Positions 47,674 to 64,000 of a stretch of DNA of 64,000 bases are shown here, piece by piece. A program made the translations under genes and the position numbers. How positions within the stretch are numbered: position 1 is the stretch's first letter; the number at the start of each line of letters is the position of its first letter. The notes beneath the pieces were generated by a model, which saw nothing but the letters and a program-made list of their open reading frames with translations, did not search any database and was not told the origin of the DNA. The DNA is taken from the IMG/VR virus record IMGVR_UViG_3300043399_000272, positions 186,001 through 250,000 of that record, one strand, 5' to 3'.

Positions 47674-48297
47674 ATGATTACAGTAGATATTTTACAAAAA
47701 ATATGCCCAAAGACGAAAACGGCAGTATTAGAAAGATATGCGTTACCTCTTCACGAAGTAGCAGAGTACTACGATATGTACAAAAATCCAAAACGTGCGG
47801 CTGCCTTTTTAGCACAAATCGCACACGAGTCAGGTGGATTTAATTTTGTAACAGAAAATTTAAACTACAGTGCTAAGGGGTTGATGACTACTTTCAAAAA
47901 GTATTTCCCAACAGAAGAATTAGCAAAGCAATATGAGAGAAAGCCTGAAAAGATTGCTAATCGTGTTTATGCTAATCGAATGAGTAACGGAGATGAAAAT
48001 AGTGGTGATGGCTGGAAGTTCAGAGGTCGTGGATTAATACAATTGACAGGCCGAGCTAACTATACACGGTTTGCCGAAGACTTAGGCATTAGCCTTGACG
48101 AAACGGTTGCATATTTAGAAACTCCTGCAGGCGCAGTTTCTAGTGCAGGATGGTTCTGGGATAACAATAACTTAAATCAGTTATGTGATAAAGATGATTT
48201 CGTGACTCTTACGAAAAGAATTAACGGTGGCACTATTGGTTTAGAAGATAGAAAACATCACTATCATATTGCATTAGAGGCATTAGGCGTTCACTAA
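47674..48297 (+). CDS. glycoside hydrolase family 19 endolysin
   Basis: FLAQIAHESG, ENLNYS, GRGLIQLTG..NY, INGG..GL.DR. Confidence 0.9.
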   Translation: MITVDILQKICPKTKTAVLERYALPLHEVAEYYDMYKNPKRAAAFLAQIAHESGGFNFVTENLNYSAKGLMTTFKKYFPTEELAKQYERKPEKIANRVYANRMSNGDENSGDGWKFRGRGLIQLTGRANYTRFAEDLGISLDETVAYLETPAGAVSSAGWFWDNNNLNQLCDKDDFVTLTKRINGGTIGLEDRKHHYHIALEALGVH

Positions 48298-54389: not shown

Positions 54390-55313
54390 ATGAAGAATCA
54401 ACTTTGGGTAGAGAAATACAGACCGCAATCAGTAAAAGAGTACGTCTTTGTAAATGACAGTCAAAAGCAACAAGTAGAAGGCTGGATTAAAAACGAATCT
54501 ATTCCTCACTTGTTGCTCAGTGGTGATCCTGGTACAGGTAAAACTACACTAGCAAAAGTTCTTATACACGAACTTGGTATTGAAGATTATGATGTACTAG
54601 AAATTAACGCAAGTCGTGAAAACTCTGTGGATGTAGTCAGAGACAAAATAGTTGGCTTTGTACAAACAATGCCTTTTGGTAAGTTCAAAGTCGTGTTGCT
54701 AGACGAGGCTGATTATTTGACTCCGGCAGGTCAGGCGGCGTTGCGTAATGATATGGAAGCATATCATGCGACTGCTAGATTTATTTTGACTTGTAATTAT
54801 CAGCATAGAATTATTCCTGCGCTAAAAAGCAGATGCCACGAGTTTCACATCAGTAAAACAGACAAAACTGAGTTTACAGCTAGAGTAGCTACTGTTTTAG
54901 TGACTGAAAATGTAGAATTTGATTTAGATACATTGGATAGTTATGTTGGAGCTACTTATCCTGATTTGCGTAAATGTTTGAATCAAGTTCAAGTAAATAG
55001 TAGTAGTGGTAAATTATTAGCGTCAGTTAATCAAACTAACAGTGAAGATGAACTATTGATTGAAGCAACTAACTGCTTTAAGAGTCAAAAAGTATTTGAG
55101 GGAAGGCAATTGTTGTTGCAATATCTAAGTTTGTATCCTACACGCATCGAAGATGTATACAGATGGATGTATAATAACTTAGACTTGTGGGGTAACACTA
55201 ATGAAAAACGTGATGCTAGTATTATCATTATTAGAAATGGTTTAGCTAATTTGAGTTTAGTGGGTATTCCTGAAATTTCACTAGCAGCCACTCTGATAGA
55301 GTTAACCAGTTAA
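54390..55313 (+). CDS. clamp loader large subunit (gp44/RFC-like)
   Basis: LWVEKYRP, GDPGTGKT, INAS, LDEAD, LKSRC, PDLRK. Confidence 0.92.
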   Translation: MKNQLWVEKYRPQSVKEYVFVNDSQKQQVEGWIKNESIPHLLLSGDPGTGKTTLAKVLIHELGIEDYDVLEINASRENSVDVVRDKIVGFVQTMPFGKFKVVLLDEADYLTPAGQAALRNDMEAYHATARFILTCNYQHRIIPALKSRCHEFHISKTDKTEFTARVATVLVTENVEFDLDTLDSYVGATYPDLRKCLNQVQVNSSSGKLLASVNQTNSEDELLIEATNCFKSQKVFEGRQLLLQYLSLYPTRIEDVYRWMYNNLDLWGNTNEKRDASIIIIRNGLANLSLVGIPEISLAATLIELTS

Positions 55314-57173: not shown

Positions 57174-57746
57174 ATGAAACAGATACTAGTTGAAGGTTTT
57201 GACTATCACGATTTAGTAGGTCAAATTTTCCCAGAAATATCAGTAGATGAGTATTCTGCAAAAATGGGATCAGATGACAACATTGTCACACTTGCATTTA
57301 CTGTTAAAGGTAAAGCCGTAGGTGAAGATTTGTCTGATTGGTTTGAACGCGGTTATATATGGGTATTAGATGCACAAGTGAGTGAGGGAGAAATCACTCC
57401 GGGAAAATACTTAGTGTTCGTTGAAATTGATAGAAGAATGGCTGTACCTGAAAGAATTGTTCAGCTTATAGAAGATTTAGAAACATTGACAGACATGCCT
57501 CTTTCTGAATGGACTATTGAGGTAGATGATGAAAAACACAAAAATCCAACAGTTGAAGTGTTGAAATCAAAAATAATTTTGAGTCCTCATCAGTATAGAG
57601 AAAAGTACGGTACAGAAGAAGAACAAGAAAAAAAAGATGACAATAAGATTGATGAAATGAAAAATCTATCAGGATTAGATCCTAGCAAAAAGTTTAAAGA
57701 ACCTGATAGTTTATTAAAAGATTTTATTGCAAAAGCAGGACTATAA
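57174..57746 (+). CDS. hypothetical late protein
   Basis: MKQILVEG leader. Confidence 0.7.
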   Translation: MKQILVEGFDYHDLVGQIFPEISVDEYSAKMGSDDNIVTLAFTVKGKAVGEDLSDWFERGYIWVLDAQVSEGEITPGKYLVFVEIDRRMAVPERIVQLIEDLETLTDMPLSEWTIEVDDEKHKNPTVEVLKSKIILSPHQYREKYGTEEEQEKKDDNKIDEMKNLSGLDPSKKFKEPDSLLKDFIAKAGL

Positions 57747-58382: not shown

Positions 58383-59165
58383 ATGACCGATTATTACCAA
58401 ACTTTGGGTGTAGCGAAAAATGCTACACCGCAAGACATTAAAAAGGCATACCGTCGTTTAGCAGGAATACACCATCCAGACAAAGGCGGTGACACTTCCA
58501 AGTTCCAAGAAATCCAAACAGCATATGAAACGTTGAGCGATCCAAAAAAGAGACAAGAGTACGACAACCCTAGTTCGTTTGGTCCTTTCAATGATCGGCA
58601 CGGGTTCCATTTTAACTTTAATGGGTTTAACATTAATGATCTTTTCGGAGCAGCGTTTAGTCAAGGATTCAGACAACCTCAAATGCCTAGTTACCGCACG
58701 ACTGTACTGGTTACTTTAGAACAAGCATATTCGGGTTCAGAACAAACATTGCAATTCAATGCAGATGGGCAGCGACAAGTCGTAAAAATTCAAGTACCCA
58801 AAGGTGTCACTGATGGACAAACATTAAGGTATGAAAATCTTATTAAAAATGCTATCTTACTAGTTGAATTTAGAATTCAGCCGCACCCTACATTCGAGCG
58901 TGACGGTTCTAATTTATATAGCATTCAAGATATCGATGTTTTGGATTTGATAATCGGAACTGAAATTAGATTTACTGCTATTTCGGGCAAAGTATTAACT
59001 GTAAAAGTGCCACCTAAAACACAGCCCGGTGCTAAGCTACGAATTCAAAATGAGGGGATGCCAGTTAATAATGGTTTCGGAGACCAATATATCTTGCTAA
59101 AACCGTTCATACCTGATAAAATAGACAATCGAATTATTGATAGCATTTTGCAATCAAGAGCCTGA
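58383..59165 (+). CDS. dnaJ: DnaJ/CbpA-class co-chaperone
   Basis: J-domain with HPD, G/F-rich linker, C-terminal domain, no Zn finger. Confidence 0.9.
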   Translation: MTDYYQTLGVAKNATPQDIKKAYRRLAGIHHPDKGGDTSKFQEIQTAYETLSDPKKRQEYDNPSSFGPFNDRHGFHFNFNGFNINDLFGAAFSQGFRQPQMPSYRTTVLVTLEQAYSGSEQTLQFNADGQRQVVKIQVPKGVTDGQTLRYENLIKNAILLVEFRIQPHPTFERDGSNLYSIQDIDVLDLIIGTEIRFTAISGKVLTVKVPPKTQPGAKLRIQNEGMPVNNGFGDQYILLKPFIPDKIDNRIIDSILQSRA

Positions 59166-59190
59166 GTGAGACATTATTTAAAGGAAGTTT

Positions 59191-61464
59191 ATGAATTCAC
59201 CCGAAATTGAAGTAATTATTGAGCAAGCATTAAATTTGGCTAAAGAGAGGTCACACAAGTATTGTACACTTGAACATTTATTGCTTGCACTGATTACTCA
59301 TCAGCCCTTTAAAAAGTGCTTAGATAGTTTTGGTGCAGATGTTGAAACACTAACCAAAGAAGTTACTCATTATATTGACACACTACATGCCATTGTAGTT
59401 GATGTTAGTAACGGAGAAGAAGTGCATCCTCGCAAAACTAATTCTCTCGAAAGAGTCATGAACCGAAGCATTACACAAGTATTGTTTACTGGTCGTAAAA
59501 TGGTAACTACTATTGATTTGTATCTGAGTATTTCTAGCGAAACCAACAGTCATGCACATTATTACTTGCTGAAATATGGTATCACAAAGCAAGAATTTGT
59601 AGCACACTGGCAAAAGAATTATAAAAATCAGGATGCAGAAACTAAACTTACTGATTCGCAAGCATCTGAAATTCTCGAAGAATACACAGTTAATCTTAGC
59701 GAACTTGCACGTAACCATAAACTAGAACCGCTTGTGGGTCGTAGTGAAGAACTGGACGACATTATAAATGTGCTAGCTAAGAGATTCAAATCAAACGTAC
59801 TAATGGTGGGGGATCCAGGTGTAGGCAAGACCGCTATCGTAGAGGGACTAGCACAGCGTATTGCTGATGGTAAAGTACCTGAGTTTCTTAAGGACCATGA
59901 AGTATATTCAGTAGAAGTAGGTAACTTGCTTGCAGGTTCAAAGTATCGTGGAGATTTCGAAGAAAAGATCAAAGTAATCATTGAAGCACTGATTACAAAG
60001 AAAAAGGCTGTGTTGTTTATCGATGAAGCACATACTATGAAAGGTAGCGGGTCTTCAAATAACGGCAGTGTTGACTTTGCTAATATGATTAAGCCTGCAA
60101 TCACAAAGGGTAATTTGAAAGTTATCGCAAGCACTACATGGGAAGAATTCTATGAGTCCTTCGAAAAGGATCGTGCATTGATGCGTAGATTCTATCGTGT
60201 GGGTGTAGATGAACCTGATCGTGATTCTACGGTTCGCATTTTGACAGGGTTAAGTACTCGGTTGAATGACTTCCATGATGTGGATATTTCTCCTGACGCT
60301 ATCACTGCGGCAGTAGATAGCGCAATTAGGTATTTGCATGACCGTAAAAACCCTGATAAGTCTATCGACTTGCTAGACGCCGCATGTGCAAAACAGCGTG
60401 TAGCTGATAACAAGGGTGCAGTCATTACTAAAGAAATGGTGTATGACCAAGTTGAACGTATTGCAGGAGTTCCAGCAGATAAACTCAAGGATCAAACAGT
60501 TGATAAGATTCAACTATTGGAATCTAATATCAAAGATAAATTGTATGGGCAAGAAGATACGGTAGATAAAGTTTTGGAACGTATTTATGTTAGCTTTGCT
60601 GGCATCGGAAATCAAAGTAAACCTATTGCAAGTTTCTTATTCTTGGGCCCTACTGGTACTGGTAAAACAGAATTGGCTAGACTGTTAAGTAAGAACCTAG
60701 ATATGCCGCTAATCAAATATGACATGTCTGAATATTCTGAGAAATTCAACGTTAGTGCTTTGCTAGGTGCACCTCCCGGATATGTTGGGTTTGGAGAAGG
60801 TAGTCTTGGTGGCGGCAAACTAATTAACGACTTGAGTAAAAATCCGCACTCTATCTTGTTGTTTGATGAAGTAGAAAAAGCACACCCTGATATCTTTAAT
60901 ATTTTCTTGCAATTGCTTGACGACGGTAAAGTTACTGGTACTAATGGTAAGTCAGTAAATGCAAAGAACTGTATTGTTATTATGACTAGTAACTTGGGAA
61001 GTCAAGATGCAGAAAGAAACAATATTGGCTTTGGCAGTCAAGAAAAATCAGGTGAAGATGATAAAGCCTTGAAGGACTTCTTCAAGCCTGAATTCAGAAA
61101 TCGTATTGACTTGATTTGTAAATTCGGTAAACTTGATATGCTAGCAATCAAGAAAATTGTCATTAAATTTACTGATGATTTGAAGAAGTCATTGAAAGAT
61201 ACCCATGATATTACTCTTAATTTGCGTGAATCAGTTGTTGAATATCTCGCTGAAAAGGGTTATGATAAGAAGATGGGTGCAAGACCACTGGCTCGAAAGA
61301 TCGATGAATTGATTAGGGTTCCATTGTCAAAGAAGATTCTTTTTGAACGTATTAAAAACGCAACTATTAACGTTAGCGTCGGGGATGATGACAAGATTGA
61401 ATTCGAAATTCAACAAAAATTAACTGCTACGGTGAATGAAGATGGGATTATTGAAGTCAGTTGA
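59191..61464 (+). CDS. clpA: ClpA/ClpB-family AAA+ chaperone
   Basis: Clp N-domain, GDPGVGKT, GPTGTGKT, FDEVEKAH, IGF loop, GARPL; no ClpB middle coiled-coil. Confidence 0.9.
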   Translation: MNSPEIEVIIEQALNLAKERSHKYCTLEHLLLALITHQPFKKCLDSFGADVETLTKEVTHYIDTLHAIVVDVSNGEEVHPRKTNSLERVMNRSITQVLFTGRKMVTTIDLYLSISSETNSHAHYYLLKYGITKQEFVAHWQKNYKNQDAETKLTDSQASEILEEYTVNLSELARNHKLEPLVGRSEELDDIINVLAKRFKSNVLMVGDPGVGKTAIVEGLAQRIADGKVPEFLKDHEVYSVEVGNLLAGSKYRGDFEEKIKVIIEALITKKKAVLFIDEAHTMKGSGSSNNGSVDFANMIKPAITKGNLKVIASTTWEEFYESFEKDRALMRRFYRVGVDEPDRDSTVRILTGLSTRLNDFHDVDISPDAITAAVDSAIRYLHDRKNPDKSIDLLDAACAKQRVADNKGAVITKEMVYDQVERIAGVPADKLKDQTVDKIQLLESNIKDKLYGQEDTVDKVLERIYVSFAGIGNQSKPIASFLFLGPTGTGKTELARLLSKNLDMPLIKYDMSEYSEKFNVSALLGAPPGYVGFGEGSLGGGKLINDLSKNPHSILLFDEVEKAHPDIFNIFLQLLDDGKVTGTNGKSVNAKNCIVIMTSNLGSQDAERNNIGFGSQEKSGEDDKALKDFFKPEFRNRIDLICKFGKLDMLAIKKIVIKFTDDLKKSLKDTHDITLNLRESVVEYLAEKGYDKKMGARPLARKIDELIRVPLSKKILFERIKNATINVSVGDDDKIEFEIQQKLTATVNEDGIIEVS

Positions 61465-62200: not shown

Positions 62201-62368
62201 ATGGCAAAGATTGTAGAAGACGTATTAGTCGTTAAATTCAGCAAAATCGTTAAAGATGCAGACGCAGATAATGGTGGTTTAGTCAATAATGACATTCAAG
62301 CAGCATTAGAGCAAGTCGCCCAAGAATTAGTGGGTGACGGTGTCGTTGTAGAAGTGGAACGAGCATAA
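62201..62368 (+). CDS. small late protein (55 aa, below ORF-track cutoff)
   Basis: MAKIVEDVLVVKFSKIVKD...VVVEVERA*; late promoter at 62169; TAATG overlap with next gene. Confidence 0.7.
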   Translation: MAKIVEDVLVVKFSKIVKDADADNGGLVNNDIQAALEQVAQELVGDGVVVEVERA

Positions 62369-62724
62369 TGTCACAAGCCACTACATTAATACTATTACCA
62401 CAGACTTACTACCAAAATAACAACGTAAATGTTGTGGGTGAGAAGGTACAAGCTGCTGCGTATTATTTAGGTAATCAAGATTTACAAACTTTAAGCTGGA
62501 GTCTTAATTCGTTTTACGGAGTCATAGACATTCAAGCCACACTTGCATCAGACCCAACTGCAAATTCTGATTGGTTCAACGTTCATCAGATTTCAGGCAA
62601 CAATACTACTACAAATAGTTTTGCAAACTTAACTGGTAATTATGTTTGGCTAAGAGCGAAAGTTAGTTTTAATAACAGCACCGGAAATCCAGGTGTAATT
62701 CAATACGTTAAAGTGAGTTATTAA
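62368..62724 (+). CDS. putative structural beta-sandwich protein
   Basis: F.G.IDIQATL...W...GNYVWLRAKV; resembles the C-terminus of 17443-18213. Confidence 0.55.
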   Translation: MSQATTLILLPQTYYQNNNVNVVGEKVQAAAYYLGNQDLQTLSWSLNSFYGVIDIQATLASDPTANSDWFNVHQISGNNTTTNSFANLTGNYVWLRAKVSFNNSTGNPGVIQYVKVSY

Positions 62725-62725
62725 T

Positions 62726-63487
62726 ATGAAATTGTTTGAGGGCGGAAACATTTGGCCTGATGTTGTAACTAATTTTGATCCAGGTGTAGTTGGGAAACCA
62801 CTCACCGCCGCCACACAAAAATATCTAGAACCATTAGGTGCAACAGTTCACACAATAGGTAGCGCATGGAAGCCTAGATTTGATAAAGACGGCAACGTTG
62901 TTCCTAGCAATGACTTAGATGCTATGGTCGATCTTGCTGAATTACAAAAAGCATTTAACACTACTGATGCTAAAACAACAAGACAAGCATTAGATGATTA
63001 TCTACAGAAACAAGGTCTAAAGACTTATAAAGCAGGGGTAACAGTTCACACTAGAATGCCGTTAGGTGGAAAGTTTTATCAAGCTGACTTAAAGGTTGTA
63101 CCGAACGCAGCCAAAGTTGCACAATTTCATAGACACGAAATACCTCAAGGCAGTCAATACAAAGGTGTCAACAAGCAACTTGTAATGAACGCACTTGCTA
63201 GCAGTCAACGTATGCTATGGAGTCCCGATGAAGGATTGTATGCAAGAGATGCTAATGGTAAGAAAGCTGAATTATTAAGTGATGACTGGGATACGATTGC
63301 TCAGTATTTACTAGGCAAAGGTGCAACAGGAAATGATTTAGGCAGTGTTGAATCTATCATGGCAAAGATTCCTGATCCTAAGCGTAGAGAAGAAATAATG
63401 AATATGGCACGTTCAGGTCATAGTTGGCAAGCTGCAACTCCTAATGTGACTGAATGGTTCCGTAGAGCAATGGATATGTTAAAATGA
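62726..63487 (+). CDS. Pol-beta-superfamily nucleotidyltransferase-like protein
   Basis: IGS...NDLDAMVD...YQADL; MKLFEG leader. Confidence 0.6.
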   Translation: MKLFEGGNIWPDVVTNFDPGVVGKPLTAATQKYLEPLGATVHTIGSAWKPRFDKDGNVVPSNDLDAMVDLAELQKAFNTTDAKTTRQALDDYLQKQGLKTYKAGVTVHTRMPLGGKFYQADLKVVPNAAKVAQFHRHEIPQGSQYKGVNKQLVMNALASSQRMLWSPDEGLYARDANGKKAELLSDDWDTIAQYLLGKGATGNDLGSVESIMAKIPDPKRREEIMNMARSGHSWQAATPNVTEWFRRAMDMLK

Positions 63488-64000
63488 AAATTCAAACACT
63501 ATTAGAAGCTGCTGGACAAGTTGGGCGTAAGTATCAACACATTGAAGATTTAGTAATAGCTAATGGTAGTGCAGGTGGACTACATGCAGTTGAACGCATG
63601 AAGCACATGGTTGACAATTACGATTCAATTGAACTTAAGTGGGACGGTATGCCAGTAGTATACTGGGGCCGTGATGAAAAAGGTGTCTTTAGAATGATTC
63701 CTAAGAATGCTTGGGCTTACTTAAAGTCAGGCAAGACACAAACTAGTTCAGGTGCAAGTACAATCATGAACAGCCCCGATGACGTTTATAAATTTGTTAT
63801 GGGCACAGGAGACGGTGGAGAAGGTCGTGCAGGATTTGCAAAGCAATTTGCTAGCTTGTGGCCACTGTTCGAAAAGATAAGCCCTAAGCAAGGCTTCCTT
63901 GAAGGTGGTTTATTATTCTTCCCTGGTTCAATGCCTGTAGTTAATAAAAACACAAATACATACGATTTCAAACCTAATATTACTACATTCCATGTACCAG
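63484..64000 (+). CDS. KxDG ligase/nucleotidyltransferase-like protein, truncated by window
   Basis: MKIQTLLEA...HIEDL...ELKWDGMPVVYWG...FLEGGLLF; open to window end. Confidence 0.55.
   Translation, partial: MKIQTLLEAAGQVGRKYQHIEDLVIANGSAGGLHAVERMKHMVDNYDSIELKWDGMPVVYWGRDEKGVFRMIPKNAWAYLKSGKTQTSSGASTIMNSPDDVYKFVMGTGDGGEGRAGFAKQFASLWPLFEKISPKQGFLEGGLLFFPGSMPVVNKNTNTYDFKPNITTFHVP

Follow-up and report, generated by a model that had tools for sequence, protein, structure and literature searches.

A predicted minimal PolX-like nucleotidyltransferase and a putative ligase-like DUF6267 protein form a conserved gene pair in a large T4-like marine phage

Introduction

Repair modules in which a polymerase is coupled to a ligase are already known. 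African swine fever virus (ASFV) encodes Pol X and a DNA ligase, a viral base-excision repair pair, and bacterial LigD unites polymerase, ligase and phosphoesterase domains in one polypeptide for break repair by non-homologous end joining (NHEJ). LigD adds nucleotides and then seals; its polymerase has the archaeo-eukaryotic primase fold and its ligase is of the classical type (PF01068 with an OB domain). In the operons of RlaP (PF10127), a nucleotidyltransferase of the Pol-beta superfamily that adds one or two nucleotides to damaged RNA 3' ends before ligation is genetically coupled to a ligase (PMC7824862; bioRxiv 10.64898/2025.12.29.696909). Here we analyzed two overlapping open reading frames (ORFs), ORF253 and ORF374, at the end of a 64,000-nucleotide stretch of viral DNA (the window), which comprises bases 186001-250000 of the 260,148-bp IMG/VR record IMGVR_UViG_3300043399_000272. 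We propose, with the chances for and against about evenly balanced, that the two gene products make up the core of a conserved phage module for filling and sealing nucleic-acid breaks, phage DNA being the most likely substrate.

The record, whose completeness is estimated at 74%, belongs to a large T4-like marine phage of the jumbo clade. It encodes a prohead protease of the gp21 type (Peptidase_S77, E = 8e-29, G000 93105-93557, minus strand) and a major capsid protein of the gp23 type (E = 1e-98, G000 90657-91655). Coordinates with the prefix G000 are those of the record, and coordinates with the prefix L002 refer to a stretch reaching 10 kb past the window end (window coordinate = L002 coordinate + 59000).

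T4-like cyanophages keep the T4 replisome without a recognisable DNA ligase or RNase H, and host enzymes are assumed to substitute. For the g30 and rnh homologues that cyanomyoviruses lack, undetected distant homologues were left possible, while substitution by the host was judged more probable (PMC2984593). One jumbo-phage subgroup was likewise described by Iyer and colleagues as having no known DNA ligase at all (PMC7824862).

Results

The first gene of the pair, ORF253, carries the following features:

62726..63487, plus strand: ORF253, predicted minimal family-X-polymerase-like nucleotidyltransferase (palm and thumb only), with no Pfam or PHROG model
62738..62755, plus strand: E5-G-G-N-I-W10, N-terminal motif of the PolX-like domain, invariant in 33 relatives, with E/G/G in 30-32 of 33 distant domains
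62858..62863, plus strand: G45-S46, hG[GS] nucleotide-binding motif of the Pol-beta type (preceded by I44), invariant in 33 relatives, with G45 in 33 of 33 distant domains
62912..62920, plus strand: D63-L-D65, first two catalytic carboxylates, invariant in the near and distant sets
63086..63088, plus strand: D121, third catalytic carboxylate, in the invariant Q119-x-D121 strand, invariant in the near and distant sets

The Pol-beta nucleotidyltransferase signature to which the original prediction had pointed was read directly from the translation (I44-G45-S46, D63-L-D65 and D121). A total of 192 metagenomic homologues of ORF253 were found. In an alignment of 33 relatives, E5-G-G-N-I-W10, G45-S46, D63, D65, T106-V-H108, Q119, D121 and K123 were invariant, and 33 much more distant PolX-like domains of fusion proteins (23-50% identity) retained G45, S61, D63, D65, Q119, D121, P112, G147 and G170 throughout and H108 in all but one (32/33). 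The stretch S-G-D-L-D-V-M of the relatives recalls SGDxDhL, which we take to be the PolX pattern around the first two aspartates.

An AlphaFold model of the 253-residue protein, computed from the alignment of the 33 relatives (predicted local distance difference test, pLDDT, 89.8; predicted template modelling score, pTM, 0.81), consists of a palm, a PolX-type thumb subdomain directly C-terminal to it and a C-terminal helical tail, and has neither fingers nor the 8-kDa (dRP lyase/HhH) domain. When the model was compared with the PDB using Foldseek, Pol lambda and Pol beta ranked first (E = 5e-7, about 200 aligned columns), which sharpens the predicted nucleotidyltransferase fold to the palm and thumb of PolX. 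ASFV Pol X likewise has no fingers or 8-kDa domain, so that this lack is compatible with a minimal PolX. Relative to ASFV Pol X, ORF253 adds the EGGNIW motif at the N-terminus and the helical tail at the C-terminus.

ORF253 did not match any Pfam, PHROG or NCBIfam model, and the PolX families were absent among its Pfam matches at E values up to 1. Searches of PDB sequences by phmmer and hmmsearch with ORF253 and its family profile returned chance-level matches only, with no PolX chain at E values up to 10, and tblastn against 50,697 phage records gave no match. We call the protein PolX-like because sequence models give no PolX membership. Taken together, it is well supported as a Pol-beta-superfamily nucleotidyltransferase and, more exactly, as an enzyme predicted from its model to be minimal and family-X-polymerase-like. 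The ORF253 family is a new, unmodelled family of such minimal PolX-like enzymes in phages.

The thumb bears on another proposal, according to which the pair repairs RNA: the PolX-like enzyme would restore one or two nucleotides at the 3' end of RNA cut by host nucleases, for example that of a tRNA, as RlaP does, and the DUF6267 protein would reseal it as an RNA ligase. Such a combination of Pol-beta nucleotidyltransferase and RNA ligase is established for RlaP (PMC7824862; bioRxiv 10.64898/2025.12.29.696909). However, ORF253 is not a member of the RlaP family, as no match to PF10127 was found in it or anywhere in the genome. Its second domain resembles the PolX thumb, which binds the DNA template, whereas the C-terminal domain of PfRlaP is all-helical, and its partner is DUF6267 instead of RtcB, Rnl1 or Rnl2. 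In addition, no tRNA genes are present in the window. RNA repair is the most serious rival to DNA repair as the function of the pair, although we regard it as rather unlikely.

The second gene, ORF374, begins within the window with the following features:

63484..64000, plus strand: ORF374 (Pfam DUF6267, PF19782), first 172 codons; the gene runs 608 bases past the window
63526..63552, plus strand: R15-K-Y-Q-H-I-E-D-L23, N-terminal motif about 30 residues before the motif I lysine; H19 invariant, E21 and D22 in at least 90% of 69 members
63637..63648, plus strand: K52-W-D-G55, motif I (KxDG), predicted nucleotidyl-lysine site; K52, D54 and G55 invariant
63895..63918, plus strand: F138-L-E-G-G-L-L-F145, motif III-like strand, conserved in the near family; G-D-L-L-Y in the wider family

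The start and motifs of this reading frame are as originally described, but the frame is cut by the window end, and the complete gene has 374 codons (G000 249484-250608, equivalent to L002:4484-5608; protein P0121). It matches DUF6267 with 54.9 bits against a cut-off of 27 (E = 1.3e-14), and the same match was obtained in the genome scan. An exhaustive profile search yielded 720 representative clusters of the family. Across 69 diverse single-domain members, whose identity to ORF374 is 23-56%, the only invariant residues are H19, K52, D54, G55, G62, K320, G342 and K362, with E21, D22, R63 and E341 present in at least 90% of the proteins; the motif I residues K52, D54 and G55 are invariant in 30 near and 64 multi-domain members as well. 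The wide consensus of the family (RIQHxEDL ... KWDGSPA ... GDLLY ... PNxVTY ... GGEGYV ... KLVxR), judged by eye, looks like motifs I, III, IV and V of lysine nucleotidyltransferases, in that order. The earlier assignment of KWDG to motif I stands, while FLEGGLLF is only loosely motif III-like, since the acidic residue lies two positions later elsewhere in the family (GDLLY).

In the predicted structure of ORF374 (pLDDT 86.3), a beta-rich core is interrupted by a helical bundle at residues ~233-329, to which the long N-terminal helix (20-44) presumably belongs. About 200 residues, this insert included, separate motif III from motif IV (G342, E341). Since only 12 residues remain after K362, ORF374 has no OB domain, and none is seen in the model either. 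A Foldseek search of the PDB listed the ligase domain of Trl1 first (E = 0.07), followed by LigIV, ASFV ligase, REL1, Chlorella virus ligase and T4 DNA ligase, and in BFVD, RNA ligases, nudivirus DNA ligases and a mimivirus capping enzyme came straight after the DUF6267 relatives. The anticipated ligase-type catalytic signature appears to be present, and the structure matches are weak though recurrent, none being individually significant. We term ORF374 ligase-like because it has this signature while profile-level homology to ligases was not found. It is moderately supported as a putative covalent (lysine) nucleotidyltransferase, an assignment that is new for DUF6267 and comes with an unusual build.

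Several of these features are those expected if the pair acted on RNA. Like RNA ligases, DUF6267 has no OB domain and possesses an extra helical domain, and its best VIA matches are the RNA ligases NgrRnl, REL1, Trl1 and T4 Rnl2. The KYQHIED motif of ORF374 recalls KYSSLEN in the K-K-Y-S-S-L-E-N-H stretch at the start of T4 Rnl2, a likeness judged by eye and not by statistics, and a feature search with DUF6267 pointed weakly to a PF09414 cluster (score 0.76). However, no profile-level similarity connects DUF6267 with T4 RNA ligase 2, REL1 or Naegleria NgrRnl, the OB-less ligases, and hhalign gave no signal to the Rnl2 family. In addition, the helical domain of DUF6267 is inserted between the motif III region and motif IV instead of being appended, and the family has an extra invariant lysine, K320.

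ORF253 and ORF374 clearly work together, because the stop codon of the former and the start codon of the latter (63484) overlap by four bases (ATGA), their order is conserved in 73 of 80 related IMG/VR loci, and natural fusions of the two are numerous. To describe the fusions, we used the 64 longest proteins among the best 150 DUF6267 cluster representatives. A hidden Markov model detected the PolX-like domain in 37 of them, on either the N- or the C-terminal side of DUF6267, and in P0227 and P0115 the two proteins are joined head to tail. The phage proteins thereby resemble LigD, in which polymerase and ligase domains share one polypeptide, but the phage polymerase is PolX-like and the ligase-like domain is a DUF6267 without OB. 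No sequence similarity to the ASFV pair was detectable. Further differences are that the phage partner protein, in contrast to ASFV ligase, is devoid of OB and DNA-binding domains, that the phage has a bacterial host, and that the phage genes are often fused. The short contigs of three distant DUF6267 proteins each carry an unannotated upstream gene (54, 243 and 262 codons) and no informative neighbours.

Completing ORF374 beyond the window revealed a third gene, ORF614 (614 codons), whose start overlaps the ORF374 stop, again by ATGA. Its N-terminus carries G-H-T-G-H, an HxGH motif, in a domain that matches phrog_3041 'cytidyltransferase' (E = 6.8e-19). No Pfam match was obtained for ORF614 itself, while PF01467 (CTP_transf_like) was found in 9 of 64 fused relatives (best E = 3e-8). 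NCBIfam gave weak matches to NMN/NaMN adenylyltransferase models (E = 0.0017-0.14), far below the cut-offs, which we treat as a lead and not as a finding. The first ~200 residues of ORF614 recur in 13 of the 64 DUF6267 representatives, always C-terminal of DUF6267, and all three domains are combined in three of them. Fusions of DUF6267 with a cytidylyltransferase-like domain were also found in the ESM Atlas and BFVD, one of them in cyanophage S-PM2. We take the HxGH domain to be part of the same module as ORF253 and ORF374, and the recurrent two- and three-domain fusions of different nucleotidyltransferase folds are new. As a separate observation, an ESM Atlas cluster of 65 viral proteins contains DUF6267 fused to a Cu/Zn superoxide dismutase domain (PF00080), which is odd for a ligase-like enzyme.

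The association of three nucleotidyltransferases of different folds might also suggest that no polynucleotide is joined and that they synthesize or transfer a small molecule or modification that contains a nucleotide. This could be a cofactor or nucleotide signal, the nucleotidylation of protein or DNA, or a DNA or surface modification involving the glycosyltransferase-like ORF328. Enzymes of the HxGH family usually have small-molecule substrates, the block contains the Pol-beta-type ORF371 besides ORF328 with its Lys/Ala-rich tails, and the ligase assignment does not have profile-level support. On the other hand, the match to a PolX-specific palm and thumb speaks for action on the primer terminus of a polynucleotide, the invariant residues K-x-D-G, E-G and K form a pattern typical of ligases and capping enzymes, and neither ORF328 nor ORF371 was fused to any member of the trio in the 64-protein sample. 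Nothing was found in support of protein nucleotidylation or interference with nucleotide-signal immunity, both of which had been suggested for the pair. We consider it very unlikely that the module does not act in polynucleotide joining.

DUF6267 was found in 468 of the 50,697 phage records, and 453 of these are named Synechococcus, Prochlorococcus or Cyanophage; pelagiphage HTVC008M and Methylophilales phage Melnitz are among the others. Every record looked at lists the protein as hypothetical, and no paper naming DUF6267 was found in the literature searched. Judged by titles, no article addressing the function of the cyanophage cytidyltransferase was found either. In S-RSM4 the gene lies in the replication cluster (g43, uvsX, g41, mazG ... 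SRSM4_065, DUF6267, cytidyltransferase ... g61), and in HTVC008M the order is uvsX, primase-helicase, gp126, DUF6267, gp128, a Zeta_toxin/AAA_33 P-loop kinase gene and cytidyltransferase. The position of the cyanophage copies inside a DNA replication cluster argues against RNA repair. The kinase gene of HTVC008M (gp129, L003:6703-7365), which stands between the DUF6267 and cytidyltransferase genes, could encode a polynucleotide 5'-kinase for end healing, and a kinase of this type beside DUF6267 recalls heal-and-seal systems, in favour of RNA repair. In the block analyzed here, however, no end-healing phosphatase or kinase was noticed, and the five neighbouring ORFs checked contain no P-loop motif.

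The known ligase families PF01068, PF01653 and PF09414, as well as PF10127, gave no match in the present genome, HTVC008M or S-RSM4, all of which encode DUF6267. T4, by contrast, has PF01068 and PF09414 and no DUF6267. A gp30-like ligase was found in 2,390 phage records, and the ten commonest names among these include no cyanophage. The distribution of DUF6267 is complementary to that of the known ligases among T4-like phages. DUF6267 thus resembles T4 gp30 DNA ligase in its proposed nick-sealing role on phage DNA, but it is a different family, without DNA-binding or OB domains.

Both proteins begin with sequences, MKLFE|G in ORF253 and MKIQTLLE|A in ORF374, that had been read as leaders of a late operon's head proteins: a gp21-type protease would cut them after (L/I)xE, and the proteins would be packaged in the head and injected with the DNA. 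In T4, gp21 cuts after L/I-X-E, and the 10 N-terminal residues of IPIII are enough for targeting to the head (PMC9026906; PMC3012670). The N-termini are as described, and with a small residue after (L/I)xE and a gp21-type protease in the phage they resemble the T4 internal proteins and Alt. The pattern [LI]xE[AGS] is rare within the first 14 residues (12 of 305 ORFs, compared with 2.2% of internal windows), and among the 12 proteins are the capsid protein of the gp23 type (MSQVLLE|S), its scaffold-like neighbour (..PLLE|S; both in G000 90618-92956) and a homologue of phrog_13138 'virion structural protein' (MKQILVE|G, window 57174-57746) encoded 5 kb upstream of the pair. Virion structural protein homologues flank the co-directional block. 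About half of the diverse DUF6267 proteins (A5, P0255-P0390) have an N-terminal extension of 8-14 residues, M(R/K)xx(E/D)(F/L/I)(L/I)xE(A/S), which recalls T4 propeptides, while the others begin at GR..QH.ED.

However, both glutamates belong to the domains themselves, because the two motifs stay inside fusion proteins. The glutamate of MKLFE (E5) is the first residue of the invariant EGGN(I/V)(W/F), which is kept, together with hydrophobic residues at -2 and -3, in PolX-like domains at internal or C-terminal positions (residues 217, 399, 410, 550 and 720). The h-x-E-A that precedes GRKYQHIED in ORF374 is similarly kept in fusion linkers. Cleavage would remove only 4-5 residues from ORF253, as compared with the 10 of the T4 leader; ORF614, which is fused to DUF6267 in relatives, does not have such an N-terminus, and the DUF6267 copies of S-RSM4 and HTVC008M, which lie among replication genes, begin without one. 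By calculation, chance alone would yield about 0.5 pairs of neighbouring genes with the motif in the genome. As a further observation, MLL(R/N)ELF stands at the N-terminus of whichever domain comes first in related lineages (P0227, P0115 and P0244 compared with P0229, P0353, P0261 and P0316).

The late operon was not borne out either. No T4-type late promoter TATAAATA lies within ~11 kb of the locus, only four occur in 64 kb where about nine are expected by chance, and a promoter scan remained at chance level. The head genes are ~155 kb away from the pair and on the opposite strand. Packaging of the two enzymes is therefore improbable in our view, while the 12 [LI]xE[AGS] proteins could be a starting list of gp21-type substrates in the present phage.

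The gene order DnaJ, ClpA-like, ORF242, ORF55, ORF118, PolX-like, DUF6267, HxGH protein, ORF328 and ORF371 is kept in the 80 IMG/VR loci where contigs reach. The DnaJ-like gene (260 codons, starting MTDYYQTLGV) and the 757-codon gene for a ClpA/ClpB-like AAA+ chaperone lie directly upstream (window 58383-61464) and accompany the block in 50-59 of the 80 loci; both were identified by eye from their translations. They are followed, after ORF242, by ORF55 (acidic, 55 codons) and ORF118 (phrog_13657, Asn/Thr-rich and, judged by composition, probably beta-rich) at window 62201-62724. The two are tightly coupled to ORF253, through an ATGA overlap and then a one-base spacer, and were found upstream of it in 68-71 of the 80 loci.

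Downstream, ORF328 (L002:7500-8486; G000 252500-253486) matches phrog_1574 and, weakly, Anp1, and is GT-A-type glycosyltransferase-like with a D-A-D motif. It has Lys/Ala/Pro-rich, histone H1-like tails at both ends and could be a DNA-associated modifying enzyme. ORF371 (L002:8518-9633; G000 253518-254633; window-equivalent 67518-68633) is a second Pol-beta-type nucleotidyltransferase of the block, in which I-S-G-S and D-L-D-L-H are followed by an acidic strand. Besides a match to phrog_36119 (E = 1e-36), it shows weak matches to NTP_transf_2, Polbeta and MntA, and it has a C-terminal DUF5661. The sole strong intrinsic-terminator-like hairpin on the plus strand (L002:13531-13552) follows ORF488, a Laminin_G_3 protein homologous to a virion structural protein, so that the co-directional array with ORF253 and ORF374 may be transcribed through to ORF488. 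Farther upstream, a lysozyme/endolysin-like gene (phrog_181, 207 codons, window 47674-48297) lies between large unannotated ORFs of 1036 and 716 codons, and a clamp-loader gene (phrog_168, E = 5e-74, window 54390-55313) is located 8 kb upstream of the pair. This part of the genome is a mixture of replication, lysis-like and virion genes.

Discussion

Nucleic-acid end repair, one of the functions named in the original prediction, remains the most likely kind of function, since Pol-beta and lysine-nucleotidyltransferase signatures occur in two genes that clearly work together. DNA is somewhat more likely as the substrate than the RNA or tRNA first proposed, given the PolX-type thumb, the synteny with replication clusters and the distribution complementary to that of DNA ligases. 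In the mechanism that we envisage, ORF253 would add one or a few nucleotides to the 3'-OH at a gap or damaged end, and ORF374, charged on K52, would seal the resulting 3'-OH/5'-phosphate nick, with the HxGH domain probably supplying or regenerating the nucleotide cofactor. The module would act on phage DNA during replication or repair in the infected cell, standing in for the absent gp30 ligase. We infer every catalytic step and the substrate; the modelled PolX-like fold of ORF253, invariant residues, fusions, synteny and a distribution complementary to that of the known ligases are what we observe.

Several points weigh against gap filling and sealing of DNA by this module. To our knowledge, all DNA ligases have an OB domain, whereas DUF6267 is without one (it has no motif VI domain), and its modelled architecture appears closer to that of RNA ligases. 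The acidic residue of motif III shifts between subfamilies (E140 in ORF374, GDLLY elsewhere). None of the sequence and profile methods used (sequence and profile searches of the PDB, with matches at chance level only, genome Pfam scan, hhalign) ties DUF6267 to a ligase family. Since hhalign probabilities were <1% when an alignment of 134 DUF6267 sequences was compared with T4 Rnl2, T4 DNA ligase and an 18-member Rnl2 alignment, homology to ligases is unproven at the sequence level; the best local segment to T4 DNA ligase lands on motif III of that ligase but is not significant. The genes upstream of DUF6267 in S-RSM4 and HTVC008M are not detectably PolX-like when compared with the ORF253 family by hhalign. 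The block itself sits between chaperone genes and virion-protein homologues and not beside replication genes, and as the genome record is ~74% complete, another ligase could sit in the missing part.

A more far-reaching version of our proposal is that DUF6267 represents the nick-sealing ligase so far missed in marine T4-like phages (cyanomyoviruses, pelagiphage HTVC008M and the jumbo clade of the present phage). It would be a new OB-less branch of the lysine nucleotidyltransferase superfamily and would act, in many lineages, within a single polypeptide or a complex with a mini-PolX and an NMN-adenylyltransferase-like domain making or regenerating its cofactor, possibly NAD+. These phages would thereby possess a self-contained machine for gap filling and sealing. 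We put this forward tentatively and think it more doubtful than not. That copies in the jumbo clade are also loaded into the head through CTS-like N-termini is a less likely extension of it. In NHEJ, ribonucleotides are added by some of the polymerases, and the ligases that act with these favour a nick with a 3'-ribonucleotide. By analogy, one may speculate that the DNA and RNA readings are reconcilable through a similar addition of ribonucleotides by the phage module.

The link between DUF6267 and the missing ligase of marine T4-like phages, which our results suggest, is new, and the gene pair offers a possible answer to the absence of a recognisable ligase from many of these phages. If DUF6267 is indeed a ligase, a function would be assigned to a near-core gene of viruses that rank among the most abundant in the ocean, and enzymology would gain a new ligase architecture, with no OB domain and an internal helical insert, that might serve as a tool enzyme. 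The PolX-like protein paired with it would represent a new phage family of minimal family-X polymerases. The recurrent fusion of nucleotidyltransferases of three different folds yields a clear, experimentally testable hypothesis.

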